This document shows positions 9,401-39,864 of a stretch of DNA of 64,000 nt, one piece after another (position 1 is the first letter of the stretch; every line of letters starts with the position of its first letter). The notes beneath the pieces are model-generated. The model made no database searches, was not told where the DNA came from, and saw only the letters and a program-made list of their open reading frames with translations. The stretch is from Takakia lepidozioides. Taxonomy: Eukaryota; Plantae; Bryophyta. The stretch spans positions 4,898,001 through 4,962,000 of the forward strand of contig CM060732.1 in NCBI GenBank assembly GCA_030704615.1, in the 5' to 3' direction. The position numbers were made by a program, and so were the translations under genes.

Positions 9401-9436
9401 GGCGGTGGCAAATACATTTTGAAAATTAACAAAATG

Positions 9437-13169: not shown

Positions 13170-14570
13170 TAATTTCGATTGATCTCATATTACACTGGGA
13201 CGTATCAGAGGGTACATTGAATATACTGGTCAAGTCTCAAAGCGAACGAAAACCATTTGGATGGGCAACCATCCGTTGGCCTATTGAACAAATTTCGATT
13301 GATCTCATATTACTCTGGGGCCTCTTACATGGCACATAGAACATAGTGGCCAAGTCTCAAAGTGAACCAAAATCAATTCGACATGGCCAACCATCCGTTG
13401 AGCCATCGAATGAATTTCGATTGATCTCATATTAGTCCAGGATCTGTGAGAGGGTGTCTCGAACGTACTGGCAAAGTTTGGAAGCAAACAAAAATGATTT
13501 GGATGGGCAACCATCCGTTCACCCGTTGAATGTATTCCGTTGGATCTGCTATTCCTTTAGGACCTGTTGGACTGTGTTTCGCGTGCTCACGATTTTTTTT
13601 TCATTCCGCTTTTTAATGGGGCGTGTAATGTAGCCATATGCGTGCCAAATTTGGGAGCGAACATAATTCATTTGGACCCAAAACCACAGTTTCTTCCCTA
13701 TTTTGCACTCCAAATTTGATTTGTGTTCAACTTCATGCACTCTTCATAGAGAGTTATGCAATAGTGAGCAAAGATAACACTTTTTTTTTTGGGGCATTTT
13801 TTATTGGTCCAAATTTTGGCGGGGGAGTAGCGGTGGGATGTTTGAAGCCGCAGAACAAAATTGAGCCAAAAAACAAAATCGATACGTGCCAGAAACCCCC
13901 AATGAAAGGTAGTGCAAACCTATTTATTGGCTTAAAATGAGTTTAAATTCAATTAAATTGTGGAATGGCTTGAGGGGTGAACGCGTCGATGGGGAGGCAA
14001 ATGATTTATTCGTCTAATGTGTCTCCACACATGCTCCAGCACATGGGGGCAAAAGAGGGGCTTCAACCACATCCGCTCAATGGGTGCAATAGTCGTGCAC
14101 GCATTGCAGGATTTCTTTTTTGCATTGAACAAAAATCAGATGACAAGTGAACGCCTCATTGGACAATCGAACAAATTTTGATTGATCTCGTATTACACTG
14201 GGACGTATCATAGGATACATTGAACACACTGGCCAAGTTTCAAAGCGAACGAAAATCATTTGGATGTGCAACCATCCGTTGGCCCATTGAACGAATTTCG
14301 ATTGATCTCATATTACTCTGGGGCCTCTTATATGGCACATTGAACATAGTGGCCAAGTCTCAAAGCAAACCAAAATCATTTCGATGGCCAACCATCCGTT
14401 GAGGCATCGAATGAATTTTGATTGATCTCATATTAGTCCGGAACCTGATACATGGTATGTTGAACATAGTGGCAAAGATTGAAAGCAAACGAAAATCATT
14501 TGGATGGACAACCATTCAATCACCCATTGAATGAATGGGGTTTCGTCTTCAATTATACTGGGACATGTTA
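13170..14570 (+). repeat. ~1.4 copies of the ~1-kb repeat unit with ~121-bp subrepeats
   Basis: Highly similar to the units at 23115-30232. Confidence 0.9.
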
Positions 14571-14898
14571 CATGGTATGCCCTTTGAAGCTCTTTTTGTA
14601 GTGTCTCCTGCCTTGTAATGTGATGCTTCTCCATGTCCACTTTATTCAATATGTTGATATTCTCCATCTGGAACCATGGTTGCAAACGTCACGTCACGTC
14701 GGACCTGACGCTGATGCGACCAACGTCACGTCAGTTTTGCCGAAAAAAATCAGTAAAACATGAGTTAGGTGAAAAATATGTCACGTACGTAGACACGTTG
14801 TATTTCAAGCGACACCTAGGCAAGTGAATGAAATGTTTTATAAATTACTCCATCCGCCAATAGTTAAGGTCATTTTTAAATCATTATTTTAAAATTGG

Positions 14899-15680
14899 TA
14901 CGACCTCCAAATGGTGGTGGTCGCAGAATTTATCTTATTTTTTAATAGTTGCGACCATTAGCAGAGGGGTTGTCGCAACATTTTTTGTTTTTTTAAAATA
15001 GATGCGACCACCAGTAGGGGTGGTCGCATTTTTTCTTTTCTTAAACAGTTGCGACCACTGCTACTGGTGGTCGCACAATTTTTTATTTATTCGTAGTAGG
15101 TGCGACCACCGACATGGGGGTGGTCGCAAAAAATTTCTGTTTTTTTAATAAGTGCGACCACCAGCAGGGGGTGGTCGCAGATTTTTATTTATTTTTTAAT
15201 TTTTAATTTTATATTTATTTAAATTTTATTAATATTTATTTATTTAAATTTATTATTTTAAAAAAAAAACCATTCTTTGTGTCCACGAGCATGGGGGTGG
15301 TCGCAGCATTTAAAAATAATAATAGGTGCGACCACCAGCATGGGGGTGGTCGCAACATTTTTTGTTTTTTTAATAGGTGTGACCACCAGCATGGGGGGTG
15401 GTCGCAGAAATTTTGTATTTGTTTAATAGGTGTGACCACCAACAGCGGGGTGGTCGCAGAAATTTGATGTTTTTTTAATAGGTGCGACCACCAGCAGGGG
15501 GGGTGATCGCAGCAAAAAAAAAAAAAAAAAAAAATAAATAATCTTTGTGACCACGAGCATGGAGATGGTCGCAGATTTTTTTTTTTTTTAATAGGTGCGA
15601 CCACCAGCATGGGGGTGGTCGCAGCAGTTTTTTAAAAAAAATAACATGCGACTTCCTCGTGCGACCTAGAGCGGTCGCAA
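14899..15680. repeat. Subterminal palindrome array GCGACCACC-N-GGTGGTCGC
   Basis: About 15 hairpin units with T-rich spacers. Confidence 0.9.
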
Positions 15681-15726
15681 CATTGGATCTGATTCGTCGA
15701 GCGTGTGAAGCTTGGAGGCTGGAGGG

Positions 15727-15734
15727 TATATAAG
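15727..15734 (+). promoter_or_regulatory. Putative TATA box upstream of the hAT transposase
   Basis: TATATAAG just after the array; similar boxes follow the arrays at 20308 and 46691. Confidence 0.4.
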
Positions 15735-16041
15735 GTGGTCCCAATGCCCCTCACTTCTTTTGTGGCAAACACTTTTGTGGCGAGTGAATGTTCTTTATTC
15801 CTTGAGCAAGAGTGTAAGCCCAAGAAGAGGGTGCGGACCGTTTGTTGTTGTGGCTTCCACCAGAGCCACTGTAGTAAATTGTCGAAAAGCACAATATTAC
15901 ATGGTGCATTGATCCACTTGGATTGATGCCTTAGTGTTGGGCCATCGCATTCTGTTCTAATATTGCTCTTCACAAATCTACCAAGTACACTAGTATTTTT
16001 CGTTCAACCTTAAGTCTGTGGTTAGGGTTTTGGGTGTGAGG

Positions 16042-18254
16042 ATGAGGGAGGAGTGGATCCATTGGTTCACCATAGACCCGCACAAAAAAGACGGTGTTCA
16101 ATGTAATCTTTGTGCATTGAAGCTGGCGGGTCGCAAAGATCGCATGTCATATCACCTCGGCTACAGAGATGGGAAGAATGCAGGGGTTAGTTTGTGCCCA
16201 AAAGCCTCCATGCGAGTGAAAGCCCACTTTGCCCAATGTGGAGGCAATATCCCACCGTCTCTTGATGTGGCCGCGGCTTCTGAGCCAAACACTCCAGGTT
16301 CGAATCAAATTGTCCCTCAGAGTTGTACCCAGTGGGATTCTTGCAAGGCGTCTACTGTTCGTGGATAAGCCGGTGGGTCAGGAGCAACACCTGATTGTAC
16401 GCCAACACTTGTACGAACCAGACCATTGAGGCAACAATCAATGTAAGAAGGCTTAAATTTGTCGCACATGAGAACTCTGGATAAGAAGTGGGCCCAATTT
16501 TTCTACGAGGCCAATATTCCGTTCAATGTCTCGAGGCTTCCTGCGTTTGTGGCTGCTGTCAAAGCCACGTCCGATTCCAAGTCCACATACACACCTCCGA
16601 GTTATCGCGATCTCCGCACAGGATTGCTAGAAGAGGCTATGTCTGACCTCACCCAAAATGTGAATGAAAAGACAGGTGATTCTCTCCGGAAATATGGAAG
16701 CACTATATGTGCGGACGGTTGGAGTTCTGTTACTAATCGACCACTGTTCAATGTCATGCTGGTCTGTCCTGCGGGGGAACAATTTTTGGGATCCGTTGAC
16801 ACAAGCGGGGAGAGAAAAGATGCACGTTATCAAGCAGGGTTGTTGACGATTTACATCGATAAAATTGGAGCTGATAAAATTGTTCAAGTGTGCACGGACA
16901 ATGCATCTAACATGGTTAATATGGCCGATATTTTGATGGTACGATATCCTGATCTATATTACCAAGGGTGTGCTGCTCATATCTTTGATCTCATTTTGGA
17001 GGATTGGGGAAAAGAATCATGGATGAAACAACTAGTAAAAATGGCAAAGTCGGTTGTGACGTTCATTCGTACATATCACATCCCTCTCGCATTGTTTAGA
17101 AAGCATGAACCCAAATACAGCCTTAGGAACCCGGGTGAAATCCGCTTTGCCACAAACTTTTTGATGGTGGATCGACTAGTGACTGTGAGGGCGGGTCTGG
17201 AGCAGGTGATCATTGACCCTCAATGGGATGCGTATGTGGGCATCTTACGCGACTCTCGTAAGTCCAAGTCTTTGAGCAAAAGTCGGAGGGTCCGCGCAAT
17301 CATTCGCTCCGACGATTTCTGGGCGAAATGTGCAAATTTTGTGTACATGGTGGAGCCGGTGTTGATTGCTTTGCGGGAGTTTGATGGAAAACAACCAATA
17401 ATGGGTAAAACATGGTTGATATTGGAAAACCTTGAGAAGCACGTGCAATCCTTGAGGCGTCCTCCATTTTCTATGGACGATGATTTGGCGGCAAGGACCG
17501 AGGATGCATTTTACGACCGCAAACGGATGGTTCACACGGACTTGCATTATGCGGGGGCCTTGCTGAATCCATTCTTGCTGGATAATACGGATTTTAGAGA
17601 CGATGTGGATGCCAAAGTCGAGCTTGTACGGGTCATCATGCAACTTGCGCCCTTGAACATGGCAGAGCGAGCATTGTCAGAGTACCAGTGCTTCTCGGAT
17701 CGGCAAAATCATTTTCATGGCATGCCGGATCCAAAAGCAATGAACATGTTGCCACATGAATGGTGGGATCTGATTGGAGCTGGAGCAAGAACGTTAGCTC
17801 CCATTGCAAAGCGTATTCTTGCTCAAATGTGCTCTGCCTCGTTCTGTGAGCGGAACTGAAGCAGTTACTCGTTTGTTTTCACAACAAGATTCGCAACAGG
17901 TTGAATCCTGCCAGGACTGACAAATTGGTTTATGTCTACACGAATTGTAGGCTATTGCGAGAGAGGAGAGCAAGTGACGCATCTGCATGGTACAAGAAGA
18001 ATCTGTTGTCTGAAAAATTTGCCTCAGAGGTCCAATCTAGCAGCAATGATGACACTGATGCCGCGAAGGACTCCGACTCCGACGGTTGGGATGGGTCCGA
18101 TGATGTGGGCAATCCTCCACATGACCCATATGAATTTAATGATGATGATGCTGCAATGCATCCATCCTTCGATGACCTTGTTGTTGATGAACTACGACAT
18201 GGTGTCATCCCAATGCGGACCCCTTCCCCCAGTGGAGCACACTCTCAACAATGA
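16042..18254 (+). pseudogene. hAT transposase (BED finger, DUF659-type DDE core, C-terminal dimerisation domain)
   Basis: W-x-WF...CNLC...H BED finger; ICADGWS, QVCTDNASNM, CAAHIFDL, EIRFAT, HEWWDL, SASFCERN*SSY, LNPARTDKLVYV; several stops and a frameshift. Confidence 0.93.
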
Positions 18255-19299
18255 AGTTGAGGTCAACTCTCCCCACCACGAGTTACACGGACTGCGGGAG
18301 ATGTGCAGGGCGAATCGTCGGATGATGACAACCGGCCGTTGTTATTCCTTCACCGACATCGTGCCCCTGTGAACCGTGTTTTATCTCACCTCGCTCCATC
18401 TCATGTTTCTCTTTCTCAAGCCGGTCCATCCCATGCTGGTCCATCTAGTCTCTCTCCCCCTCATGTAATTCCTTCCATCGCTAGTCCGATCTTGGGAGAT
18501 GGTTCTTTTGCTACGGGATGACGACGACCGGCCATTGTCGTTTCATCTGGCCCGACGACGTCCGCATGTGAACCGTGCTCCCTTGACCCTCGCTGGTCCA
18601 TCTCATGCCCCTTCCTCTCATGTCGGCCCCTCTGATGTACGTGCGAGTAGCCTTCCTCATACGAGACCTGCTCCAAGGCCACCACGAAATCCGGGACAAG
18701 CCCAGAAACGGCAGAGAATTGTGCAACCTTTTTGTTGGTGACCGACATGTGAACATGTCTGATACCCTAAATGGTATTCATGATAGGAGTGGAAATCAAC
18801 CAGAGAGACAACTGAACGTACTCCGAGGACGACTACAAGTCCAATAGCCAGTTGCCTCTGGAAACGAAAGAACAAATGGAGATCATGATTCTAGCACTGA
18901 TCATAGGAACGAGGGTGAAGTGAGTAGGGACGAAGATTTTGTACTAGACGTGAGATCATACCATCGTCGTTGTGGCAGACGGAATTAAGTACAGCTATAA
19001 TTTCTGTGACTTGTCACATGATGTGTAGTATGTTTCCATAGATATCCATGTTTCAGTTTGGGTACATGCATACGTGTACGGAAATAAAAAGGGTGGAATA
19101 TGTGTACCCAAGAAAGGGTTTGGTGGTTGTGCGTGTGTTTGTGTTTCGTCATTACCTTTACATTGTTGATTTCCTATTATGGTTTCGAAAGCCACAAAAA
19201 GCCAGGTGCAGCTCCCAACATTCATCTTCCCCTTCACAAATCCATGGGGAGTCGATACATGTGCTTTTCATCTGCCTCTCCAAACATACATACAGGTGC

Positions 19300-20250
19300 A
19301 AGGGGACCAACCTCATGGTGGTCGCACATATTTTTAAAAATACAATTGTGTAACCACCAGTAGCGGTCATCGCAACTGTTAAAATAAAAGAAAAATGTTG
19401 CGACCACCCCCTGCCCGTAGTCGCACCGATTTACTGATTTACTGATTACCCCTGCTGGTGGTCGCAGATTTTATTTTATTTTATTTTGGAAAACACCTGG
19501 GAGCGACAACTCACAAATCAGGCCCATTAGTAGTGAGAGGAGAAAATAACCTCTTTCATTTATGTGCCAAGAGGCGTAGGAATGGGGCACCACACACGAA
19601 CCATACCACACCCATCAAGTAGCAAGATTTGACCCCAGAATCGTCCGGGTCGCACTCAGTGCACTTAACCAACTGAGCTACTGACTGTTGGTAGATATTA
19701 AAAAATCGGAAAATTACACGACCACCCCCCCTACGACCACCCCCCTGCTGGTGGTCGCATCTATTAAAGAAAAAGGAAAATAGTGCGACCACCAGCAGGT
19801 GGTGGTCGCACCTATTTGTTTTAAACAAAATCTCTGCGACCACCCCTCTGCTGGTGGTCGCGCCTATTAAAAAAAAAAATTATGCGACCACCTCCCCTAA
19901 AAAAAAAAAATCTGCGACCACCCCCCTACTGGTGGTTGCACCCATTAAAAAACATAAACAAATCTGCGACCACCCCCCTCTGGTGGTCGCACCAATTAAA
20001 AATAAATAAAAATTCTGCAACCACCCCCCTGCTGGTGGTCGCACCCATTAAAAAAATTTAAAAAATCTGCGACCACCCCTCTACTGGTGGTCGTACCCAT
20101 TAAAAAACATAAACAAATCTACGACCACCCCCCTGCTAGTGGTCGCACCTATTAAAAAAAATAAAAATTCTACGACCACCCCCCTGCTAGTGGTCGCACA
20201 TAATAAAAAAAGAAAAAAACTATGCGACCACCCCTGCTGGCGGTCGCAGC
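19300..20250. repeat. Internal GCGACCACC palindrome array
   Basis: About 14 units, interrupted by a SINE; lies upstream of the cargo gene at 20671. Confidence 0.88.
19469..19693 (-). mobile_element. tRNA-derived SINE
   Basis: Minus strand shows A-box TAGCTCAGTTGG, B-box-like GGGTCAAATC, a unique body and an (AAAAT)n tail; second copy at 36757-36980 shares the 5' boundary. Confidence 0.75.
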
Positions 20251-20670
20251 TATTACTAGCGTGCACAGTCATGATGACAGCGCGCGCCCCGAGTGTGGAC
20301 GGGGGGCTTATAAGGCCTTGGAGGCCATTCTCTCCCTCACTTTTCTCCACACCAGGACTTGGTGGGCGATGGGATGTTGCATTCCTTGTCATTGAGTCCA
20401 AAGTGGAGGGGGTGCTATTGGTTGGGTGGGGGGTATTTTGGGGCGTTGGATTCTACGAAATCGATGTTGAGTACCTCCCGGGAAGCCCTCCTCTAACACC
20501 CACGTTTTTTTCATATTGCGTCATATCACTTAGAACTGTCGAGGGAGTGACACGTGCCTCTAGTACTTGGGGAGGATTCATTAAGGAGTAGGATTAGGTA
20601 CGATTTAGGAGGGTTGGGAGAGCATTTTTCTTAGCAAACACCTGTCGAGTAGGGGTAAACCAAAGACATA

Positions 20671-22560
20671 AATGGCGGAGGAGGAAGACAGAGGAGGTCA
20701 TCCCAGGGATGACGATAATGAACGTGGACCTCCCAAAAAAAAACCAAAAAGGGCCAGGCGCGAACTTCGTTGGGACATATACAATGACCCCAACATTCTT
20801 GCGGAACCAGGTTGAGAAGTTTGGAAGTTGGGGCAGCGGTGGTCGCTTGGTGACTGCAGGGAATTTGTGGACTGGTGTCACATAAATCGTTTGTGGCCCA
20901 GAGATAGGCATGATCCACAAACCAAAACAAAATCAAGCTAGCTTGCATTCCTGCGCCAACCCGCATTTTCGCCACAGGGCAGAGGAGGTACATACAACAT
21001 TGTGGGGTCAACCGCTCGTCAACAACAAGGTCCCGTATTTATTTGCGGCCATGTTGTACACAGAGTTGATTTTATTGCGACCGGTGGATTGGCAAACTGC
21101 CACTGCGAAACAACGTAGTAGACTATACATGTTCTCTGATATCCCAGACTTGTATATACGTCAGGGGCAGGACATCATACGGTTTGATGGAAACGACGAG
21201 GTGGAAGAAGGAGGAAAGGCGGATGGAAACGACGATGTGGAAGAAGGAGGAAATGCAGACCAACCTCCAGATTATACGCCGCAACAGGTCTCCGCAGCTG
21301 GGCCTTCAACGTCTGAGGTGGAGGGGGGCGAGGTACGCTCTCCGTTGGAGGAACAGTTGGCCGCACATGAACAGCACATCAAAGACCTGCAGGACATTGT
21401 TCATTTGCAACAGTGGCAACTAGCGAAGTTGCTGGAAAGAATGGGGTTGGGGACTCTCGACAGCGTACGCGGTGTGCTTCAGGACCCGAGGCTAATCACC
21501 AACGAGCAAGACATATTGGCGCGTTTGAATATGCCACCAATGGACATTGACCGCGTCATCAACGGGGTTGACTCAATCGGGCATGGGAATAAAGTGCAAA
21601 CGTCTGAACTGGACCCGGCGAGAGGGTTGAGAAGAAGACTTGCGGCGGAGAGGGCAAGAAAAGGGAAGGACCCCATAGTGGAACTGGGGAATGTTCAGCC
21701 GTGCAAATTACATTTTGCCCAAGAACAGGAATTAGAGCAGCTTGTGGGGGAACGCGAGCAAGCTAGGGTTGTTGCATATCGGTACTCAAATGCCATGCAA
21801 ATCCGATCGTGGCCATGGTTGAAGGGGAATTGGCGGAATTGGGTGACATGGGCGGGCCATCTAGCATCGCGGGAAACACGGATAGAAGAAGCGTTGTCCT
21901 CTCTCCAACGTGCAGCACGTTTGTCGAATCGAAGCGTATATAGTATCTATGCTAATTTGCAAAGGCACGACACTGTGCGTGATGTATTCACGTCGAAGTA
22001 CACTGGATTCACCACATGGGGGTGATGTGCATCATGTTTGAGCACTGTGTGCATACAATTTCCGATACCAATAACAGCATAAACTGGGATTTGGAAGTAG
22101 AGGAGGAGTGGGACACCAGGCTGAGGATGTCATCCTACATTAATGAGGATAAACCACCCAGTCCAAAGGGAGCTTTTTTGCCGGAACTTGGGAGGGCATT
22201 GGAGCTGTACCAGACAAAGATTCTTCCGACTGCTTGAGGATCCGTGGGTGCCAGCGGAAAACGACCCATACAATCGCGAACCGATTAGGAGAGACCTATT
22301 TTTGAGGGAGTTGGAGGCCGCTAGCATCCGTTGGGAGGATATGAATGAGACGTACTAGGTGCCTCGTCGGGATGATGGGCCATTTCTTCCAGAGTTGCGC
22401 AGAGACCCCCAGCAGGAGGAGGTGTTGGACAATTTCAAGGCTGTCATCACGAGTGTTCTAAAGTATTGGCAGAACACATGGCGTAACCAAGTTTACTGGT
22501 GGAGGCACGTCATTTACACCCGGAGCATCTTCATCAACATCTGGAGATGACGACAACGAA
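20671..22560 (+). pseudogene. Paralogue of the RING cargo gene, with the RING block deleted
   Basis: Shares EVHxTLWGQP, AAMLYxE, PVxWQTA, WAxHLASR, SIYANxQR, INWxLExEEEWDT and FCRNLGGHWS with 10402-12732; has frameshifts and stops. Confidence 0.75.
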
Positions 22561-23114
22561 GTAATAAATCTACATGAAGATGACTAGAAAGGCTAGAAAC
22601 GTAGGGAGTAGGCCAAAGGTCTCAGGTTGCGAAAACTTAAATGTGCAACCCACTGTATAGTCTACGTAATTTTTGGAAATATGAGGTTCATCCTTTGAAC
22701 CATTTTTTAATAACCTCATACTTGTTCGGTACCTGTTTGACGGCATGTACAATATACTGACAAAGTTTCAAAACAATGAAAAATTGTTGAATGAAGATAC
22801 CGTTGGTTCACCCATTGCAATATTTTAAATCGAACTCATACTTGTCCGGTACCTTTAAGAGGGCATGTACAATGCAATGGCAAAGTTTGAAAGCATTCAG
22901 AAATCGGCACATCGAGTAACCATTGGTTCCTCTTGTGAACCATTTTTTATTGATCTCATACTTGTCCGGTCCATGTAAGAGGCATGTAAAACATACTGGC
23001 AAAATTTCAAATCATTCAAATTTTTATTTATTAAGGAACCTTTGGTTTATCCTTTTCACCATTAACGATTAATCACAAATAAATGAACAGACGCATAAAT
23101 CATTTGCCTCCAAA

Positions 23115-26100
23115 TGATTTTGGTTCGCTTTGAGACTTGGCCAGTATCTTCAATGTGCCATGGAAGAGGCCCCAGAGTAATATGAGATCAATCGAAATTC
23201 GTTCAATGGGCCGAGGGATGGTTGCCCATCCAAATGATTTTCGTTCGCTTTGAGACTTGGCCAGTGTGCTCAATGTACCCTCTGATAGGTCCCAATGTAA
23301 TATGAGATCAATCAAAATTCGTTCGATGGGCCAATGAGGCGTTCAGTTGTCATCTGGTTTTTGTTCATTGCGAAAAAAAAAATCCTGCAATGCGTGCACG
23401 ACTATTGCACCCATTGAACGGATGTGGTTGAAGCCCCTCTTTTGCCCCCATGTGCTTGAACATGTGTGCGACACATGTGCGGAGACACAACAGACGAATA
23501 AATCATTTGCCTCCCCATCGACACCAAGCCATTCCATAATGCAATTGAATTTAAATTAATTTAAAGCCAATAAATAGGTTTGCACTGCCTTTCATCGGGG
23601 GTTTCTGGCACGTATCGATTTTGTTTTTGGCTCAATTTTGTTCTGCGGCTTCCAGCATCCCACCAATACTTCCCTGCCAAAATTTGGACCAATAAAAAAT
23701 GCCCCAAAAAAAAAGTGTTCTCTCTCGCTCACTATTGCATAACTCTCTATGAAGAGTGCGTGAAGTTGAACACATATCAAGTTTGGAGTGCAAAAAACAG
23801 GAAGAAACTGTGGGTTTTGGGTCCAAATGAATTATGTTTGCTCCCAAATTTGGCACGCACGTTGCATATGGCTACATTACACGCCCCATTCAACAACCGA
23901 ATGAAAAAACAATCGTGAGCACGCGAAACACAGTCCAACAGGTCCCAAAGCAATAGCAGATCCAGTGGAATACATTCAACGGGTGAGCGGATGGTTGCCC
24001 ATCCAAATCATTTTTGTTTGCTTCCAAACTTTGCCAGTACGTTCGAGACACCCTTGCACAGGTCTGGGACTAATATCAGATCAATCAAAATTCATTCGAT
24101 GGCTCAACGGTTGGCTCGAGATGATTTTGGTTGCTTGAGACTTGGCCAGTATCTTCAATGTGCCATAGAAGAGGCCCCACAGTAATATGAGATCGAAATT
24201 CGTTCAATGGGCCGAGGGATGGTTGCCCATCCAAATGATTTCCGTTCGCTTTGAGACTTGGCCAGTGTGCTCAATGTACCCTCTGATAGGTCCCAATGTA
24301 ATATGAGATCAATCAAAATTTGTTCGATGGGCCAATGAGGCGTTCAGTTGTCATCTGGTTTTTGTTCATTGCGAAAAAAGAAATCCTGCAATGCGTGCAC
24401 GGCTATTGCACCCATTGAACGGATGTGGTTGAAGCCCCTCTTTTGCCCGCATGTGCTTGAACATGTGTGCGATACATGTGCGACGACACAACAGACGAAT
24501 AAATCATTTGCCTCCCCATCGACACCAAGCCATTCCATAATGTAATTGAATTTAAATTAATTTTAAGCCAATAAATAGGTTTGCACTGCCTTTCATCGGG
24601 GGTTTCTGGCACGTCTCGATTTTGTTTTTGGCTCAATTTTGTTCTGCGGTCCAGCATCCCACCACTACTTCCCCGCCAAAATTTGGACCAATAAAAAATG
24701 CCCCCAAAAAAAAAGTATTCTCTTCACTCACTATTGCATAACTCTCTATGAAGAGTGCGTGAAGTTGAACACAAATCAAGTTTGGAGTGCAAAACAGGGA
24801 AGAAACTGTGGGTTTTGGGTCCAAATGAATTATGTTTGGTCCCAAATTTGGCACGCACGTTGCATATGGCTACATTACACGCCCCATTCAAAAACCGAAT
24901 GAAAAAAAAATCGTGAGCACGCGAAACACAGTCCAACAGGTCCCAAAGCAATAGCAGATCCAGCGGAATACATTCAACGGGTGAGCGGATGGTTGCCCAT
25001 CCAAATCATTTTTGTTTGCTTCCAAACTTTGCCAGTACGTTTAAGACACCCTCACACATGTCTCGGACTAATATCAGATCAATCAAAATTTATTCGATGG
25101 CTCAACGGATGGTTGGCCATGCTTTGAGACTTGGGCCAGTATGTTCAATGTGCCATGGAAGAGGCCCCAGAGTAATATGAGATCAATCGAAATTCGTTCA
25201 ATGGGCTGAGGGATGGTTGCCCATCCAAATGATTTTCGTTCGCTTTGAGACTTGGCCAGTGTGCTCAATGTACCCTCAGATAGGTCCCAATGTAATATGA
25301 GATTAATCGAAATTCGTTCGATGGGCCAATGAGGCGTTCAGTTGTCATCTGGTTTTTGTTCATTGCGAAAAAAAAAATCCTGCAATGCGTGCACGGCTAT
25401 TGCACCCATTGAACGGATGTGGTTGAAGCCCTCTTTTGCCCGCATGTGCTTGAACATGTGTGCGACACATGTGCGGAGACACAACAGACGAATAAATAAA
25501 TCATTGCCTCCCCATCGACACCAAGCCATTCCATAATGCAATTGAATTTAAATTAATTTAAAGCCAATAAATAGGTTTGCACTACCTTTCATCGGGGGTT
25601 TCTGGCACGTATCGATTTTGTTTTTGGCTCAATTTTGTTCTACGGCTTCCAGCATCCCACCACTACCCTACCTTCCCCGCCAAGATTTGGACCAATAAAA
25701 AAATGCCCCAAAAAAAAGTGTTCTCTTCGCTCACTATTGCAGAACTCTCTATGAAGAGTGTGTGAAGTTGAACACAGATCAAGTTTGGAGTGCAAAACAG
25801 GGAAGAAACTGTGGTTTTGGGTCCAAATGAACTACGTTTGCTCCCAAATTTGGCACGCACGTTGCATATGGCTACATTACACGCCCCATTCAAAAACCGA
25901 ATGAAAAAACAATCGGCACAAAAACACCACAGGTCCAACAAGAGCAAAGCAATAGCGGAATAATACATTCAACGGGTGAGCGGATGGGTTGCCCATCCAA
26001 ATCATTTTTGTTTGCTTCCACACTTTGCCAGTACGTTCGAGACACCCTCGCACAGGTCTCGGACTAATATCAGATCAATCAAAATTCATTCAATGGCTCA

Positions 26101-29100
26101 ACGGATGGTTGGCCATCGACATGATTTTGGTTCGCTTTGAGACTTGGCCAGTATCTTCAATGTGCCATGGAAGAGGCCCCAGAGTAATATGAGATCAATC
26201 GAAATTTGTTCAATGGGCCGAGGGATGGTTGCCCATCCAAATGATTTTCGTTCGCTTTGAGACTTGGCCAGTGTGCTCAATGTACCCTCAGATAGGTCCC
26301 AATGTAATATGAGATCAATCGAAATTCATTCGATGGGCCAATGAGGCGTTCAGTTGTCATCTGGTTTTTGTTCATTGCGAAAAAAGAAAATCCTGCAATG
26401 CGTGCACGGCTATTGCACCCATTGAACGGATGTGGTTGAAGCCCCTCTTTTGCCCGCATGTGCTTGAACATGTGTGCCAACCATCCGTTGAACCATCGAA
26501 CGAATTTTGATTGATCTGATATTAGTCCGAGACCTGTGCGAGGATGTCTCAAACGTAGTGGCAAAGTTTGGAAGCAAACAAAAATGATTTGGATGGGCAA
26601 CCATCCGCTCACCCGTTGAATGTATTCCACTGGATCTGCTATTGCTTTGGGACCTGTTGGACTGTGTTTCGCGTGCTCACGATTTTTTTTTCATCCGGTT
26701 TTTGAATGGGGCGTGTAATGTAGCCATATGCAATGTGCGTGCCAAATTTGGGAGCAAACATAATTCATTTGGACCCAAAACCACAGTTTCTTCCCTGTTT
26801 TGCACTCCAAACTTGGATTTGTGTTCAACTTCACGCACTCTTCATAGAGAGTTCTGCAATAGTCAGCGAAGAGAACACTTTTTTTTTGGGGCATTTTTTA
26901 TTGGTCCAAATTTTGGCGGGGAAGTAGTGGTGGGATGCTGGAAGCCGCAGAACAAAATTGAGCCAAAAACAAAATCGATACGTGCCAGAAACCCCCGATG
27001 AAAGGTAGTGCAAACCTATTTATTGGCTTAAAATTAATTTAAATTCGATTACATTATGGAATGGCTTGGTGTCGATGGGGAGGCAAATGATTTATTCGTC
27101 TGTTGTGTCTCCTCACATGTGTCGCACACATGTTCAAGCACATGCGGGCAAAAGAGGGGCTTCAACCACATCCTTTCAATGGGTGCAATAGCCGTGCACG
27201 CATTGCAGGATTTTCTTTTTCGCAATGAACAAAAACCAGATGACAACTGAACGCCTCATTGGCCAATCGAACGAATTTCGATTGATCTCATATTACATTG
27301 AGACCTATTTGAGGGTACATTGAGCACACTGGCCAAGTCTCAAAGCGAACGAAAATCATTTGGATGGGCAACCATCCCTCGGCCCATTGAACGAATTTCG
27401 ATTGATCTCATATTACTCAGGGGCCTCTTCCATGGCACATTGAACATACTGGGCCAAGTCTCAAAGCGAACCAAAATCATGTCGATGGCCAACCATCCGT
27501 TGAGCCATTGAATGAATTTTGATTGATCTGATATTAGTCCGAGACCTGTGCGAGGGTGTCTCGAACGTACTGGCAAAGTGTGGAAGCAAACAAAAATGAT
27601 TTGGATGGGCAACCATCCGCTCACCCGTTGAATGTATTCCGCTGAATCTGCTATTGCTTTGGGACCTGTTGGACTGTGTTTCGCGTGCTTACGATTGTTT
27701 TTTCATTCGGTTTTTGAATGGGGCATGTAATGTAGCCATATGCAACGTGCGTGCCAAATTTGGGAGCAAACGTAGTTCATTTGGACCCAAAACCACAGTT
27801 TCTTTCCTGTTTTGCACTCCAAACTTGATCTGTGTTCAACTTCACACACTCTTCATAGAGAGTTCTGCAATAGTGAGCGAAGAGAACACTTTTTTTTTGG
27901 GGCATTTTTTATTGGTCCAAATTTTGGCGGGGAAGTAGTGGTGGGATGCTGGAAGCCGTAGAACAAAATTGAGCCAAAAACAAAATCGATACGTGCCAGA
28001 AACCCCCGATGAAAGGTAGTGCAAACCTATTTATTGGCTTTAAATTAATTTAAATTCAATTGCATTATGGAATGGCTTGGTGTCGATGGGGAGGCAAATG
28101 ATTTATTCGTCTGTTGTGTCTCCGCACATGTGTCGCACACATGTTCAAGCACATGCGGGCAAAAGAGGGGCTTCAACCACATCCGTTCAATGGGTGCAAT
28201 AGCCGTGCACGCATTGCAGGATTTTCTTTTTCGCAATGAACAAAAACCAGATGACAACTGAACGCCTCATTGGCCCATCGAACGAATTTCGATTAATCTC
28301 ATATTATATTGGGACCTATCAGAGGGTACATTGAGCACACTGGCCAAGTCTCAAAGCGAACGAAAATCATTTGGATGGGCAACCATCCCTCGGCCCATTG
28401 AACAAATTTCGATTGATCTCATATTACTCTGGGGCCTCTTCCATGGCACATTGAACATACTGGCCCAAGTCTCAAAGCATGGCCAACCATCCGTTGAGCC
28501 ATCGAATGAATTTTGATTGATCTGATATTAGTCCGAGACATGTGTGAGGGTGTCTTAAACGTACTGGCAAAGTTTGGAAGCAAACAAAAATGATTTGGAT
28601 GGGCAACCATCCGCTCACCCGTTGAATGTATTCCGCTGGATCTGCTATTGCTTTGGGACCTGTTGGACTGTGTTTCGCGTGCTCACGATTTTTTTTTCAT
28701 TTGGTTTTTGAATGGGGCGTGTAATGTAGCTATATGCAACGTGCGTGCCAAATTTGGGAGCAAACATAATTCATTTGGACCCAAAACCACAGTTTCTTCC
28801 CTATTTTGCACTCCAAACTTAGATTTGTGTTCAACTTCATGCACTCTTTATAGAGAGTTCTGCAATAGTGAGCGAAGAGAACACTTTTTTTTTGGGGCAT
28901 TTTTTATTGGTCCAAATTTTGGCGGGGAAGTAGTGGTGGGATGCTGGAAACCGCAGAACAAAATTGAGCCAAAAACAAAATCGATACGTGCCAGAAACCC
29001 CCGATGAAAGGCAGTGCAAACCTATTTATTGGCTTAAAATTAATTTAAATTCGATTACATTATGGAATGGCTTGGTGTCGATGGGGAGGCAAATGATTTA

Positions 29101-30232
29101 TTCGTCTGTTGTGTCTCCGCACATGTTCAAGCATATGCGGGCAAAAGAGGGGCTTCAACCACATCCGTTCAATGGGTGCAATAGCCGTGCACGCATTGCA
29201 GGATTTTCTTTTTCGCAATGAACAAAAACCAGATGACAACTGAACGCCTCATTGGCCCATCGAACGAATTTGGATTGATCTCATATTACATTGGGACCTA
29301 TCAGAGGGTATATTGAGCACACTGGCCAAGTCTCAAAGCGAACGGAAATCATTTGGATGGGCAACCATCCCTCGGCCCATTGAACGAATTTCGATTGATC
29401 TCATATTACTCTGGGGCCTCTTCCATGGCACATTGAACATACTGGCCCAAGTCTCAAAGCGAACCAAAATCATCCCGATGGCCAACCATCCGTTGAGCCA
29501 TCGAATGAATTTTGATTGATCTGATATTAGTCCGAGACCTGTGCGAGGGTGTCTCGAACGTACTGGCAAAGTGTGGAAGCAAACAAAAATGATTTGGATG
29601 GGCAACCATCCGCTCACCCGTTGAATGTATTCCGCTGTATCTGCTATTGTTTTGGGACCTGTTGGACTGTGTTTCGCGTGCTCACGATTTTTTTTTCATC
29701 CGGTTTTTGAATGGGGCGTGTAATGTAGCCATATGCAACGTGCGTGCCAAATTTGGGAGCAAACATAATTCATTTGGACCCAAAACCACAGTTTCTTCCC
29801 TGTTTTGCACTCCAAACTTGATTTGTGTTCAACTTCACGCATTCTTCATAGAGAGTTCTGCAATAGTGAGCGAAGAGAACACTTTTTTTTGGGGGCATTT
29901 TTTATTGGTCCAAATTTTGGCGGGGAAGTAGTGGTGGGATGCTGGAAGCCGCAGAACAAAATTGAGCCAAAAACAAAATCGATACGTGCCAGAAACCCCC
30001 GATGAAAGGCAGTGCAAACCTATTTATTGGCTTAAAATTAATTTAAATTCAATTACATTATGGAATGGCTTGGTGTCGATGGGGAGGCAAATGATTTATT
30101 CGTCTGTTGTGTCTCCGCACATATTCAAGCACATGCGGGCAAAAAAGGGGCTTCAACCACATCCGTTCAATGGGTGCAATAGCCGTGCACGCATTGCAGG
30201 ATTTTTTTTCTTCGCAATGAACAAAAACCAGA
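23115..30232. repeat. Head-to-head tandem array of a ~1-kb unit (about 3.4 reverse + 3.8 forward units)
   Basis: Period ~1000 bp (23345/24346/25338/26350 and 26640/27652/28646/29645); orientation switches at ~26476. Confidence 0.92.
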
Positions 30233-30349
30233 TGGGCATGTAGAAGACACTTGCAAAGTTTCTGAGCAATAAAATATCATTTCATCGGGGAAGTTTTCGT
30301 TCACCTTTTCATCCAATTTTGAATTGAACTGGATTTTTACTAAATAAAA

Positions 30350-31050
30350 TGATTTAGAGGGCATAGGATTGTGGGGCGCAATGAGTGTGGGGCGCAATGA
30401 TTTTGTTTTTGGCTTGATTTTGTTTTGTGAGTAAAACCCTCACACCACCACATCCTTGCCAAAAAATGTACCAAGAAAAATGTTTTGAAAAAAAACGTTC
30501 ATCCTTTGCTCTATGCTCATTATTGCATAACTTTCTATGAAGAGTGCATGAAGTTGAAGATAACTTCACCTTGGAGTGCAAATGAGGGAATAAAATGTGT
30601 TTTGGATGCAGACGATGTCTGTTCATGGTGATATTTTCCATGCAACTCTTCATGTTGTTATCAAGCATATGGCTTCAGAATGGAATTAAAAACAATTCAT
30701 GTGCAGGCGAAAGATTGTTTTTCCTTATGAATTTGAATAACCGATTCAAACAACTTTGTTGAAATTCAACTTTGGTCCATATGTGCTTAAGTACGTACAA
30801 ATCACGTACACAAAGTTGCAAGCGAAGAAATAATCATTTGCCCCCCGAACGACTCGTTAAACGTTTCAACCAATTTTCAATCATGAATCATTTAATAGGG
30901 GAACTATTGGTTCACCCTTAGAACCATTTTAGATTGACCTCATACTTGTCCGGTAACTTAAAGAGGGCATGTACACAACATTCCCAAAGTTTCAAATCAA
31001 TCTAAAATCATTTGGCAGGGGAACAATTGGTTCACCCATTGACCCGGTGT
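30350..31050 (-). repeat. Diverged copy of the ~1-kb unit and its ~120-bp subrepeat
   Basis: Recognisable segments such as ATTGCATAACTTTCTATGAAGAGTGCATGAAGTTGAA. Confidence 0.7.
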
Positions 31051-31199
31051 ACACTGTCACTCTTCAAGATTCGTGGGTGTGGTGCTTGATTATCCCATAT
31101 GATGGACCCAGGTGCCATGCCCAAGTAATAAACCATTTAAACATTATGGTACGAGACAAACACAATTGAAAACAACATTTATTCAAACATGATGTACAG

Positions 31200-32710
31200 T
31201 CAGAGGTCTACAAGTTTCTATCCATCCTCCAGCAATTTTTGGGCTCAGGCCAATTGAATAGCCCCGTCATGAAACGCTTCACAACATTTTCTAGTTTGTA
31301 CCGCAACTCTACTGTGTCTACACACAAGTTTTCTAGAGCGGAAGCAAAACAAGTTCTAGTAGACATATCGTTGAACAGATTTGCATCGAACGTGTTACCC
31401 CCAGTTATTGCCTAGGCTATCTTCCCAATTGCAAAGGTCTCTGATGGCACGGTTAGAGGGGGCCTACGAGGTGTGTCATCTGACTGGTTGTTGGCTACAT
31501 TATGAACAATTGCAATTTCAGGTGCAATCCACCATCTATGTGTGAGAGTCTTTATCATCTTGTCTCTGCTCTCGAAAATGTACAACGTGGTTTTTGGGTT
31601 ATCCGTCGTGGAGGCCATCCCCCAATCGCATACCCCGATGTACACATCTTCAGACCTTTGTGGAAAATGATGTTGTCGGGGGACATGTCGTTGTGCAAGA
31701 GGTGGTGATTATGGACGTTGAGCATGATGTGCAAAAGCGCCCATGCCAATTGGGTGCGATTCTGTCGGAATCGAACCAGTCGGTTGACCTCCTGCATTTC
31801 CTGCTCCGTCCCCCGTCGTTCCATTAACTCCCTGTTATCCCGATCATTCCCCCATTTCCTGTCAATACTCAACCATGATCGTATGGTCCCCCCATTCCAC
31901 CAATATGTGTAACCTTCATTTCGACGTGGATGCAACGCAAAATACTTTATGATGCCGAAATGATGGAACTTTACAGCCAACGCCTTATTGTTATGTTGGA
32001 CTTTGGCAAGCTCAACATTTGTTTCCCTGGGCGTTTTCCCTGCTAGCTCCCAAGATGGAGGAATGAATTGATCCCCAACAATTCTAACCCTTCGAATTGT
32101 ACCATACCCTCCCTGTTTGGGCGCGTCGAGTTGTTGTACCTGTGCGTTTGTGGATATGTATCTCACGTTCATGCCGCATCCGCGGACGAAGACCCTGCCT
32201 TCCATGGGAGTGGTTTTGTACGTCGTTTGGCGTGGGCCTTTGCCATGTCAGACCATCAATCCACAAGCACAAACAACTCCTCATCCGAAGTTGGCATGCG
32301 ACCTTTAGCTACAAGTGTTCTCGTAACAAACTTGTCCATGGTTTGCCTTAGATTCCATGTGGCATCATGGGCCCGGTCCTCCATCCATTTCGTGAACTGG
32401 AACTTCGCCCTGTCCTCCTCCCATTCATCCCTGGCCAAAGCCTCCCTCATTCTCATCTCCATATTGTGCTGGAATCTAAAGGAACCCCTCATTCTTATGT
32501 CGGACATACAAAAGATTCAAACGCATTATGTCATTGTCCTTCAAATAATCCAACACTACTTGCTTCACCACCTTCGCGGCCTCTGCGCTTGGATAGTCTT
32601 TTTTATCGACCTGACTATCTCGTTCATGTGCATGTTTACGCTTCCTACCTTTACGCCCACTTCCCGAGGAACCCCCTGACACTGCGTTCGAAGCAACGTT
32701 TTCGGACATG
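31200..32710 (-). pseudogene. Protein kinase (divergent Ser/Thr type) with N-terminal extension
   Basis: GGYGTI Gly-loop, LAGK, HNDMSPDNIIFH catalytic loop, DWGMAS (DFG position) and WIAPE; frameshift near 31650 and further stops. Confidence 0.85.
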
Positions 32711-33027
32711 ATGAAAGTACTCTGCGGAATAGACGCGGCTTCGTAACGGAAAACTAAACCCAGACTATTGATAACCTTATATACTAGTAGACCAATTTCC
32801 TCACCCTCTATTGGTATAGTACCCAAAGCAAACTCTCCCGCAGTCCCAGGGAAAAAAGGCAAAAACTCCTCCCCCACACAAATCCACTTTCTCCCCCCCT
32901 CCCACGCTCAGTCCTGGCCATCGAAGTTCAAACTCCAAGAAGCCCCAGAACCGCACTCACAGAGAGGGAAAAAAGTGGGTTGGGAATGAGGGGTAGGCCC
33001 TGATATACTGCCTGGAGAGGCCTGAAG

Positions 33028-34050
33028 TGCGACCGCCTCTGCTGCCCATTCACGCCTCGCCACGTGTCCAGGGAGCGGTCGCACCTAATAACAAAAAAGA
33101 AAATGTGCGACCCCCCATAAGCGGTCGTACCTAATAACCAAAAAAAAAAAGTCTGTGACCACCACTGGCTGGTGATCGCACCCATTTAAAAAATAATTAA
33201 AAATGTGCGACCATCCCCTGCTGGTGGTCGCACCCATTTAAAAAATAATTAAAAATGTGCAACCATCATCTGCTGGTGGTCGCACCTATTTAAAAAAATT
33301 GAAAAGTTGCGACCACCACCTGCTCGTGGTCGCACCTATTTTAAAAAAAAGAAAAAATTGCGACCACCACCTGCTGGTGGTCGCACCCAATTTAAAAAAA
33401 GAAAAAATGTGCGACCACCCTCTGCTTGTGGTCGCACCTATTAAAAAAAATGAAAATGCTGCGACCACCACCTACTGGTGGTCGCACCCATTTAAAAAAT
33501 AAGAAAAAATGTGCGACCACCCCCTTCAAGTGGTCGCACCTATTTTAAAAAAATAAAAATTTGTCCGACCAACCTTTGCTGACGGTCGCATGATTGACAA
33601 TATAAATCATAATATATGAATTTTACAGATAATTAATGAAGTCCACGTAATAAGGCCACATCGGTTGCCACGTCGGTTCTCATAGTAAATAGTCAGTAAT
33701 AAAGTAAAAAAATAAACATATTTATGTACAGTAACGTCGGTTTTGGACGTGACGTGACGCACGTCCGTCACTGACGTCGGACGTGACGCTGACGCGTCAA
33801 CGCCACGTCACGTCCAAATTTGCAACTAAGGCTGGTGGTCGCACCCAATTTTTTTTATAAAAAAATGTGCGACCACCCTCTGCTTGTGGTCGCACCTATT
33901 AAAAAATTTGAAAATGCTGCGACCATCACCTGCTTGTGGTCGCACCCATTTAAAAAATAAGAAAAAATGTGCGACCACCCCTTTCTGGTGGTCGCACCTA
34001 TTTATAAATAAATAAATAAATGTCCGACCAACCGTTGCTGACGGTCGCAT
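33028..34050. repeat. Right subterminal GCGACCACC palindrome array
   Basis: Units with A-rich spacers, mirror orientation to 14899-15680. Confidence 0.9.
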
Positions 34051-34287
34051 GATTGACAATATAAATCATAATATATGAATTTTACAGATAAATAATGAAG
34101 TCCACGTAATGAGGCCACATTGGTTGCCACGTCGGTTCTCATAGTAAATAGTCAATAGTAAATTTTAAAAATATATATATATGTACAGTAACGTCCGTTT
34201 AGGACGTGACGTGATGCACGTCCGTCACTGACGTCGGACGTGACGCTGACGCGTCAACGCCACGTCACGTCCAAATTTACAACTAGG
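33373..34287. repeat. Tandem duplication of the inner element's right end (458 + 457 bp)
   Basis: 33373-33830 and 33831-34287 both begin GCTGGTGGTCGCACCCAATTT and end ...CCAAATTT(G/A)CAACTA(A/G)G. Confidence 0.88.
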
Positions 34288-35288
34288 TCTGGAACAGATC
34301 CAAACATGTGTGCAGAAATCCTTAAATAAGCAAATGACCATCTCAACTTTTATAAGCCTCATCCCCAGCTTCCGGTTTTGATGGTCATTTGGTTTTTTAA
34401 GTCTTTATATACGCATGTGTGGATATGTTCCAGATGGAAGATATTAACATTGGAAAAATAAGAGTTGGAGAAGCACCTCATTACGAAGACATTACAGAAG
34501 ACCTCAACATGTTGAACATCTGGATGAAGAACATTGCTCATCGTCGCTTCAAAGTTCAAGCGCTTCTGAAATGATCACATGTTTGTTGGTGGAAGCAGAT
34601 ATCGTAGGCCACATTGATCTCGTACCCATCGAAGACTCTCGTAGGCCACATGGAACGGTTCATGTGATACATTTTCACAAATGCGATGTAATACATTTGT
34701 GAAATAATATCACATCAACCGTTTAATGTGGCCAATGCACCTCTTCCGCACCATGGCGGAAATGTTCGCCACTTGAAAGCACAAACACAAATAATCCGTG
34801 CAAACAATCTCAAGAATCATATATACTGCAAGGTGTTTCATACTGCCGATGTTCATGTAGCTGAATTATTTAGGAATCGTTTTGTTACTCCCATGCCAAC
34901 AACATCAGGTCCACTGCGACTGCCATATTCCAAATTCCGTATCAGCCACCACGGATATGAAACCAAGAACTTCGCACAAAATCTCCAATTCATTCAATTT
35001 ATGGTGGGCCATGGCTGCAGCCTGCAAGCTGGCCTGGGTGGCTGATACGTTCGTTTGAATATGACAGTCTCAGAGGACGTTGACATGGGAATATTTCCAG
35101 CAAAGCAAATCGGGGGAAGTACCTTGAATTACCTGGAACCACCAAGTCATGCGGTTGAGCCACACATCCATTGCAGGTTCGGAAACTTCAAGTGGGGTCC
35201 TTATACTCTCCGATGCATTCCAGATCGACAGCCACCGTGTCTGCCATGTCCGATCCAATGTCAGGAGCAGGAAGAAGAGTGGCTATTG

Positions 35289-35934
35289 CTAGGAAGGAAC
35301 TTCAGTGCATTGAAACCTCACATTCTCTTTCGCCTCCACACATGCCGTTGAGAGGTGATGCAGTTTCTCCAACTGCATGGTCGGCTGCATGGCCCGAGAA
35401 TAGTGTTTTGCAATCTCGAGGATGAAGTCCTTTCCAAATGCCGGATCTGCAATGGCCACCAGCTTCACAAGCTTTGACTTGTATTTGGTTCTGGACTTGA
35501 CTTCGACTTCCTTCAAGTGCTCGGTCAATGACTGCAATGTTTTTGTCTGCCCCTCACTTTCCATGAAGAAGCGTTTGGCATGGGCCAAATCCAGCTTGAT
35601 GTTTGACTGCCAAGAAAAACATGCAGAAGCATTACATACGATCCATGTGGAAAGATGACTAGAAATTGGGGAAGGATGAGCAGAGGAAAATGAGAGGACG
35701 ACTTACTTCGTATATGACCTCTACCATTCCATTCATAGTGAGGCGATACCATGTCCGGTCTATTTTTGCCAGGGTTTTTTGAATGAGCTCGGGCTCCAGC
35801 ATTTCGGCGAACATGTGTGGGTCAGTGAGACCAGTTTTCCTCACCCTGTACAGCATATGTGCCATGTGGGTATGCACGTAAGCATTTTCAGTGACCCTGC
35901 GAGGCACACTCTCCAGTTCAGTCCAATGAAGCAC
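35289..35934 (-). pseudogene. Degraded ORF relic of unknown function
   Basis: Two co-oriented protein-like ORFs; no motif recognised. Confidence 0.3.
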
Positions 35935-36756
35935 GGAAACAAAACTGATTGGAAACCGCAGAAAACGTCACTCTCTCCATCAACATACTCACCACCGAAC
36001 CACTCTCCGGAAGCATACGAGCAGCATACTTACTCCCCAATTGGATACTTTCAGCATCTTACTCCGGGGTCAGTTACTATTATGTTTTGAAGAGCATACG
36101 AGTAATTCATCATCTTCGCGATTCACTGAAAGTCTGCAAGACCACCAATTCTTCGAGAAGTGCAGCTGAACGGTTGCACAAGACATTGTTGGTTGGCGTA
36201 ATATTGGAGGATATTTTTTGTGAGGTCATCACCATATCAACGATTCTCGAGACAGCATTTCAGGGACTTCTTCCATCTTCTGCTGACGAAAACCTTCGAA
36301 ACAACGGAAGAATACAGATTTGAAAATGGTCCCTCCAACCTTGTCAAAATATCGTGATTTTGGGAAATGACTTTCCTCAAAATATTTTCATCATAAGTAC
36401 GTCGGCCGACATTGTCTTGTACTAACGGACTTCAGCCCTCTTTCTAGAAGTTGATACTCTCATTGACATGGTTTACGTTACTTGTATTGGTCCATGCCGC
36501 ATGGGGCGAGACTTACTCAAATTGACATGGTTCTGAAATAAAACCTGGTTGTTTATCATCAATGTCTCCCCATTGTCTTTCATTTCATTTCATGGTATTG
36601 TGTCATTGTGCCATGTTTTGCTCACATATTTGATTGATTTGTCTTGTACGTTACATAGTAACGGCCTTCACAAGCTCAGTCGCGGTTACGAATATGACTG
36701 GTGCTCCAATCATCCATCAGGCCGCGGATCATGAAGCGAGTTATCACCCGACACCC

Positions 36757-36980
36757 ATTTTTTTAATTTATTTTTTAATGTAATGGAAACACCTGGGAGC
36801 AACAGCTCACAAATCAGGCCCCCTTAATAGTATAACCTCTTTCACAGTAACCCCGCCATGTGGCGTTGGAATGGGACACCACCCATGAACATATCACACT
36901 CGTCAGTAGCAAGATTTGACCTTATAATCATCTGGGTGGCACTCAGTGCACTTCACCAACTGAGCTACTGACTGTTGGTA
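36757..36980 (-). mobile_element. tRNA-derived SINE (second copy)
   Basis: Homologous to 19469-19693, with A-box TAGCTCAGTTGG, GGTCAAATC and an A-rich tail. Confidence 0.75.
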
Positions 36981-37639
36981 TCTCATTCAACTCTTACTAA
37001 ACGTCGAATGAACAGTGGAACTTGCTTTATGAGCCAATAGAAACTGTTTTTTCTCCTGAAGTTTATACATAATGTTTCTTTATTGCTCATATTATATATT
37101 AATAGACAAACAATTATTTATATCTTTATATTATATTTAAAAGTATCCATTTAAATTCATTTAAATAATTTAAAAAAATACATATTCAGATATTTCTCCT
37201 TATTTCTGGACCAAACTTTAGTCCAGATTTACTTAAAATTGTGTTCAATGTAGTATAGGACGAGCAATAATATGACTATTAGGGCTGGCAGCGAACTATT
37301 TGCATCATACGAGTTCTCCCGGGATGATTGGGACCTCCGGTTACAGCATGAGTAGGATATGTATGATACAAATAGGGTTCCTTTGAGATAGGGATCACGT
37401 AGAGGGGCATTGTAGATATTCTCATGATGTATTTTGTATACATCCGATTAATCGATTGATGTAAATATCTTTTCTTGTTGCTCGTGTGGATTGCAACTTT
37501 GCATATGTGATCTGAACATACTTATGCACATGTGGACCAAATATGAGCTTGAACCAAGTTCCTTCAATGGGTCATTCAAGTGTTGAACGCAGCTACGTGT
37601 CGTAGAGACAAAAAACTGCATTTCGCCTACACATGATTT

Positions 37640-38200: not shown

Positions 38201-38599
38201 ATTGGTTGATAGGGTGAACACGTCCTTGGGGGACAAATGATTTTGTTTGGGTTTGAAACTTTACATGCGTGACGCTGCGCACATACATGTAATTACTGAA
38301 TGACATGTTCGATGTATGCACACGTTGAAGGTTGTTGTTTGCATTTCGCTTATAATAAGTTGTATGGTTGCAAGGACACATTATGATATATGCCCGTATA
38401 TTCATTTGTTTGTATCAGGACTTTGTCCCTCCCTTCCTGGTCCTTTCTCTTGGCACCCCATCCGAAACAACCCAAGTATATCAGGTGGGAGCCGTGGGCA
38501 AGACGCCGCCCCCACGGTACCGAACGATGATGACGATGACAGTGACAGTGACAGTGACAACAACAATGAGGATGAAATTAACCAGGAGGATGTGTAAGC

Positions 38600-39862: not shown

Positions 39863-39864
39863 TC

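Follow-up and report, generated by a model that had tools for sequence, protein, structure and literature searches.

What kind of element occupies the 19.6 kb of DNA that lies between two copies of a single 8-bp word in the genome of the bryophyte Takakia lepidozioides, and why does it hold several genes, when hAT elements are textbook one-gene DNA transposons? The locus lies within a stretch of 64,000 nucleotides of contig CM060732.1 (positions 4,898,001 to 4,962,000), referred to here as the window, whose numbering is used throughout for coordinates of this locus. Our reading, which we hold at a probability of about 0.8, is that the element is a dead member of a hAT lineage with several genes, in which a kinase gene, a RING-family gene and, in relatives, an orphan gene accompany the transposase, presumably as selfish helpers.

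The assembled sequence contains one hAT insertion, spanning 14675-34287 and bounded by an exact 8-bp target site duplication (TSD), TCTGGAAC, at 14667-14674 on the left and 34288-34295 on the right. Identity between the two flanks ends at 8 bp. The chance of an identical 8-mer of such composition at two fixed boundaries is approximately 1e-5, and 0.14% of random position pairs give matching 8-mers if a slip of 3 nt is allowed at each end. The termini read CATGGTTGCAAA on the left and, reversed, CCTAGTTGTAAA on the right, and are identical at 9/12 positions or, across 20 nt, at 10/20. The left end (L type; 14675-14810, plus strand) consists of an imperfect 12-bp terminal inverted repeat (TIR) and a subterminal block rich in CGTCA/TGACG, and is 72% similar to an end at 9265. 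The right end (R type; 34050-34287, minus strand) likewise has a TIR followed by a CGTCA/TGACG-rich block, and is 72-78% similar to an end at 45518; both blocks are putative binding sites. The final 460 nt of the right end occur as a tandem duplicate (33373-33835 versus 33831-34292, 92% identity), and of the two copies only the outer one is flanked by the TSD, which is not the flank of the internal copy (33373-33830, minus strand). A scan for end-like sequence between the two termini found none other than this duplicate, so the unit is not divisible into two smaller elements. The 8-bp TSD, short TIRs (5-27 bp), transposase motifs and subterminal repeats were all found, making the window copy a hAT element by all membership tests run, and 8-bp TSDs with short TIRs are the norm for the superfamily (PMC12506042).

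Whether both boundaries derive from the same event was addressed with a modelled empty site, in which the two flanks were joined by script with a single TSD and then folded. The rejoined flanks produced one hairpin of ~290 nt (-126.6 kcal/mol; z -16 versus shuffles), with 57 base pairs crossing the rejoined junction and the TSD inside the stem. The left arm of this hairpin is now found at 14593-14666 and its loop and right arm at 34296-34500. Because the rejoined flanks form one hairpin, they were in our view once contiguous. Energy-only folding and duplex controls were weak, as other hairpins and purine-rich tracts in the window also score well, and the contiguity argument therefore rests on the pairs across the junction and on a unique reverse match: 14615-14674 is the reverse complement of 34427-34484 (77%), the only non-repeat match that it has anywhere in the window (BLAST). 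Taken with the TSD, the split hairpin indicates a single past insertion into a hairpin, the rejoined fold acting as an internal stand-in for the empty site. It is this feature that gives the window copy its special value, since the split hairpin ties both junctions to one insertion.

A preliminary description of the window, made from its letters, had proposed an exact 8-bp TSD, CGTCA-rich blocks together with GCGACC arrays at both ends, and a large hAT element with asymmetric ends that moves as one unit. The first two proposals agree with our results, with the addition that the arrays are also internal (19731-20255), and the third is supported by the exact TSD, the rejoining flanks, the lack of an internal terminus and the existence of relatives with a matching gene set. 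Its identification of a hAT transposase and of a kinase inside the element was likewise correct, as set out below.

The transposase is a pseudogene at 16039-18053 (plus strand) with a DUF659 match (Pfam E 1e-36). It is interrupted by stops at 16366, 16444 and 17857 and by a frame change near 17878, and retains the D-D-E and CxxH motifs, located at 16711, 16894, 16969 and 17836. Over 636 aa it is 43% identical to P0001, an intact 776-aa relative that has PF05699. Its closest relatives, at 43-51% identity, are all from metagenomes, and a distant one is from Physcomitrium patens; the tree of relatives took in no reference transposases of the named hAT clades Ac, Buster and Tip. All three genes of the window copy (transposase, RING-family and kinase) are broken, and the copy has no capacity to make transposase and retains both of its ends.

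The kinase pseudogene (31226-32710, minus strand) reads inward from the right end and contains three frame changes and two stops, with the G-loop, lysine, HND and DWG motifs retained. Contig L009 from run SRR15431198, a T. lepidozioides metagenome from British Columbia (PMC9021317), has 97.4% DNA identity to the window over 31755-33087 with its frame open there, and may represent the window locus or a sister copy; this match by itself points to Takakia as the probable host of the window. Members of the family carry the G-loop, VAIK lysine, helix-C glutamate, HxD loop, DFG-like and APE motifs of eukaryotic protein kinases, from which activity is predicted, and the catalytic residues are kept down to 25% identity between members. 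The modelled structure (predicted local distance difference test score, pLDDT, of 85) shows a protein-kinase fold, and its identity to kinases of solved structure and to viral kinases is 10-15%. At 50% identity the family comprises 292 clusters. No named host relative was found for the 20 clusters looked up, the only named record being a lichen metagenome bin, and no close host kinase was present among the 292 clusters or in the PDB. Relatives sought in viral contigs and bacterial genomes were not found either, so that there is no sign of viral origin beyond the generic fold. Pairwise ratios of nonsynonymous to synonymous substitution (dN/dS) were 0.09-0.33, dS being saturated in the other comparisons. 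Judged by sequence, the kinase stands apart as a separate family with no close known relative.

The inner RING-family gene (20675-22496, plus strand) is a paralogue of a gene at 10405-12606 that belongs to a related element surrounding the insertion, here called the outer element. What remains of it is an orphan domain at the N terminus and the C-terminal part; the RING-H2 finger has been lost through a deletion of ~146 codons at ~22176. The C3H2C3 finger was found in the outer copy and in relatives, for which ligase activity is predicted. The preliminary description was thus right to place a RING-family paralogue inside the element, although the finger itself is missing from this copy. The N-terminal domain of ~150 aa is common to the RING gene and a separate orphan gene of the relatives (pairwise dN/dS 0.37). 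Its structural model is confident (pLDDT 89) and has no match in Pfam, Atlas or PDB, including no match to a DNA-binding fold, which does not by itself prove a new fold.

Each gene in the window copy is preceded by a palindrome array. The left array (14919-15673) is built from ~52-bp units that all contain a GCGACC...GGTCGC palindrome, and lies upstream of the transposase with a TATA-like word following at 15727; the middle array (19731-20255) lies upstream of the RING-family gene and is not followed by a terminus; the right array (33077-33590) lies upstream of the kinase. Genes of the relatives are likewise preceded by arrays, with family-specific motifs.

Much of the remaining length is taken up by a repeat block at 22685-31042, composed of diverged 120-bp units, 1-kb units and then a degenerate copy. 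Approximately 3.3 reversed and 3.8 forward 1-kb units, 91-96% alike and each built of 120-bp subunits, meet at ~26476. The inverted 1-kb part (23104-30234; arms 95% identical over 3.1 kb) corresponds to the 7-kb satellite palindrome of the preliminary description. Inner 1-kb units are 86-90% identical to a unit outside the element, and since the 1-kb unit also follows the outer RING gene, it is shared by the family in this genome and has been expanded in the window copy. Neither a strong local fold nor a match in the loci of relatives from other samples was found for the 1-kb repeat, and Rfam gave nothing above threshold in 19001-38500, which includes the block. The element would measure ~12.5 kb without the expansion; the giant size of ~19.6 kb proposed earlier therefore stands as the length of one unit, but one inflated by a local repeat expansion of ~7 kb. 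A dispersed repeat of ~230 nt (78%) was also noted at 19469-19693 in the inner element, at 36761-36980 in the outer element and at 1419-1475 near the start of the window.

Related loci in other samples show that these genes travel together. The same kinase family and RING-H2 gene accompany transposases that are only ~45-50% identical. Element B (L007 and L010) has CAGGGTTGT at both ends and contains, within 20,906 bp, a kinase, orphan, RING and transposase gene with arrays before the genes, and in element A (L001, L011 and L015) these four genes are spread over ~22.6 kb. A third locus, L008, holds arrays, a RING remnant and a transposase. Contigs L025-L027 encode an intact 494-aa kinase, a 343-aa orphan protein and a 1039-aa RING-H2 protein, and are 98.5-99.7% identical from a shared CAGGGTTACC end that is joined to three different flanks, which indicates recent movement of that end with the accessory genes attached. 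L024 joins RING and orphan genes to a kinase ~25-30% identical to the others, and no transposase was found in the L024 DNA fetched; its two genes with the shared N-terminal domain (L024 3223-3774 and 5050-7778) lie upstream of this divergent kinase. CAGGGTT-type ends occur among the relatives, and gene order, orientation and array motifs differ between families. From their sequences, the accessory genes appear to be old element genes under purifying selection and not recent host captures. The earlier notion of gene cargo holds in that the genes move with the element, but not in the sense of captured host DNA, given kinase dN/dS values of at most 0.33 and linkage across relatives.

Among known systems, the lineage resembles the hAT superfamily (Ac/Tam3/hobo; DUF659 and Dimer_Tnp_hAT in plants) in its 8-bp TSD, short TIRs, subterminal repeats and a DDE transposase with CxxH and a C-terminal dimerisation region. 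It differs in size (13-23 kb versus a few kb), in having two or three fixed extra genes and in its internal arrays, one ahead of every gene. hAT elements go unmentioned in a review of giant eukaryotic transposons (PMC6431247), and Repbase in 2017 held no moss hAT (PMC6027215). The 14-kb cargo-carrying ToxhAT/ToxTA transposon of wheat fungi was formerly named as a hAT and has been moved to Tc1/mariner because its TSD is TA (PMC12506042), so it does not provide a precedent for a large hAT. VANDAL elements (Mutator-like) are also multi-gene DNA transposons with family-specific motif arrays in non-coding parts; their VANC proteins bind short motifs amplified there as tandem arrays, in a family-specific manner (PMC5735166). 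Unlike VANDAL, the present lineage has a hAT transposase, a kinase and a RING-H2 gene, its anti-silencing function is suggested by analogy, and no VANC-like protein was recognised, the N-terminal domain having no Pfam or structural match. The closest example of a plant DNA transposon with a gene for protein modification is KAONASHI (Ulp1 protease gene) of non-TIR Mutator-like elements, where this gene is retained alongside others (PMC13317346). There, however, the transposon is of Mutator type and the enzyme a SUMO protease of recognisable host origin, as opposed to a hAT with a kinase and a ubiquitin-ligase-like protein lacking a close host parent. In the literature searched, from which most subscription journals were absent, we found no description of this hAT family nor of kinase and ubiquitin-ligase-like genes in a hAT element.

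Movement of the whole unit would follow established hAT biology, in which the transposase binds TIRs and subterminal motifs, excises the entire unit and inserts it with an 8-bp staggered cut. The accessory genes would be kept as selfish helpers because they raise the element's own copying, and in the window copy the decay of the genes, like the growth and inversion of the 1-kb repeat block, would have preceded or followed the last jump. As to how the genes help, we tentatively favour self-activation against host silencing, in the manner of VANC for VANDAL, at somewhat less than even odds. In this scheme the orphan N-terminal domain would recognise the arrays, and the RING-H2 ligase and the kinase would take host silencing or chromatin proteins, or one another, as their substrates. 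Its most specific form, an old bryophyte hAT with a control module of its own, consisting of an array reader of unmatched fold fused to a RING-H2 ligase together with a dedicated kinase that counters host silencing, is more speculative and on balance unlikely to be correct throughout. Several observations weigh against the reading of a multi-gene lineage with helper genes, or against parts of it. Among the relatives only element B retains both ends intact, and its flanks agree at 4/8 positions and form no TSD; the left end of element A is degenerate; and matching TSDs were looked for in relatives A, B and C without success. The sequence followed in L025-L027 runs from the CAGGGTTACC end into the accessory genes and stops short of a transposase or second end, and transposase L006 has no accessory gene in its readable 10 kb upstream. 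TATA-like words follow some arrays only, and the arrays could be transposase sites. As the N-terminal domain matches no DNA-binding fold, array binding by it is a conjecture.

The strongest of the competing roles is that the kinase and the RING ligase act on the transposase itself, by phosphorylation and degradation, so as to time or limit jumps, with the arrays as transposase sites. A kinase and an E3 ligase form a common phospho-degron pairing, the arrays adjoin termini as well as genes, and the array motif of the relatives resembles the subterminal motif; transposases can, moreover, themselves activate cognate copies (10.64898/2026.08.24.746577). This scheme leaves unexplained the stand-alone second gene with the same N-terminal domain in the relatives, and the window array motif, GCGACC, differs from the subterminal CGTCA; we regard it as doubtful. 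It is considerably less probable that the accessory genes act as a poison-antidote or spore-killing module, which would put a cost on losing the element. In its favour, two or three fixed genes of enzyme-like type have long been kept in a selfish element, and the resistance domain of Spok proteins resembles a kinase. Neither a nuclease nor a toxin domain was found in the accessory proteins. That many copies are dead is neutral here, as strict addiction in a multi-copy family need not prevent it. Drive genes are carried by large fungal elements (PMC8092012), which again speaks for such a module. The helper-role probability remaining after self-activation, transposase control and poison-antidote belongs to other roles or to neutral cargo.

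Two further explanations deny the lineage its gene set or its unity, and both appear very improbable. The 19.6 kb could be a composite of a small left hAT and an unrelated, kinase-bearing right end, rearranged or misassembled and with a TSD that matches by chance. The ends are only 9/12 alike and the region is nested, repeat-rich and rearranged, which speaks for it; it would, however, have to accommodate a chance TSD with a probability of 1e-5 to 1e-3, flanks that rejoin as one hairpin, the lack of a terminus inside, and an element B that holds the same gene set between paired ends. Least probable of all, by a small step, is a Pack-type hAT with host gene fragments acquired by chance and carried neutrally. 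Pack-TYPE elements (Pack-MULE and Pack-hAT) are TIR elements that also move gene sequence between their ends, Pack-hAT elements are known in maize and rice (PMC8903248), and the genes of the window copy are broken. Pack elements are, however, non-autonomous and carry recent host fragments, whereas here the transposase is the lineage's own and the other genes are old, selected and full-length: the same genes accompany transposases only 45-50% identical, the relatives have full-length single-frame open reading frames with low dN/dS, and close host kinases are lacking in the collections searched. A transposase gene lies inside the element (intact in relatives) and the cargo, judged by those collections and by its dN/dS, is no recent host fragment, so the element failed the test for Pack-TYPE membership, and we consider this explanation already largely refuted. 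A dead copy of a multi-gene hAT lineage thus continues to be our preferred reading.

The surroundings of the insertion belong to the outer element mentioned above. Its L-type end at 9265 with the flank ATATTAAG occupies 9257-9430 (plus strand), and the R-type end at 45518 with the flank CTTAATAT occupies 45510-45700 (plus strand). By sequence similarity both ends belong to a family related to that of the inner element. CTTAATAT is the reverse complement of ATATTAAG, and both ends are inserted in one repeat type; repeat blocks of the CCTAAGG/CCTTAGAG type, the host repeat of both outer ends, lie at 5059-6220 and 8718-9260. Most simply, there was probably one outer element with an 8-bp TSD, the right part of which was later inverted so that the end at 45518 is its probable right end, the alternative being two insertions at a favoured site. 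The outer RING-H2 gene (10405-12606, plus strand) has its finger at ~11749-11880 and six in-frame stops. It is followed by 1-kb/120-bp repeats of the same family as the inner block (13171-14580, plus strand), and hence a RING gene and the 1-kb repeat are both present immediately beyond the left junction as well, as parts of an adjacent member of the family.

The 19.6-kb element is inserted in a hairpin cluster of the outer element. This cluster (34288-35080) consists of three hairpins, namely the split one and those at 34644-34733 and 34909-35078, and 34801-34884 is 80% like 47627-47710. A near-perfect hairpin of 540 nt (47017-47558; -287 kcal/mol, z -25) lies directly behind the R-type end at 45518, after its array and TATA-like word, and could supply small RNA; a miRNA-style target scan with the hairpins gave no convincing target within the window. 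In relatives, long hairpins lie between the kinase and the orphan gene (L010 7877-8323 and L022 2909-3291), and the lineage may thus have conserved its hairpin blocks. Broken orphan reading frames of the outer element at 35000-36500 (minus strand) had no match in Pfam or in the loci of relatives. Beyond these, fragments at 38600-39900 resemble CACTA transposases by eye, without a Pfam match for the one frame tried, and tandem coding repeats of 196/85/111 nt at 40057-42500 resemble pentatricopeptide-repeat units. At 55414-56750 an array of ~26-bp palindromes with a 53-bp period has the layout of the GCGACC arrays with another motif, and is likely a subterminal or promoter array of another element.

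If our reading holds, the multi-gene organisation familiar from Mutator-like elements arose in hAT transposons too, with kinase, RING-H2 and orphan-domain genes kept under selection across deep divergence. Intact and recently mobile relatives exist, as represented by L025-L027. Should the accessory genes indeed form a control module directed against host silencing, they would constitute a transposon counter-defence operating via phosphorylation and ubiquitination and unrelated to VANC. The annotation of bryophyte genomes is affected as well, since kinase and RING genes of this sort will be wrongly counted among the signalling genes of the host.

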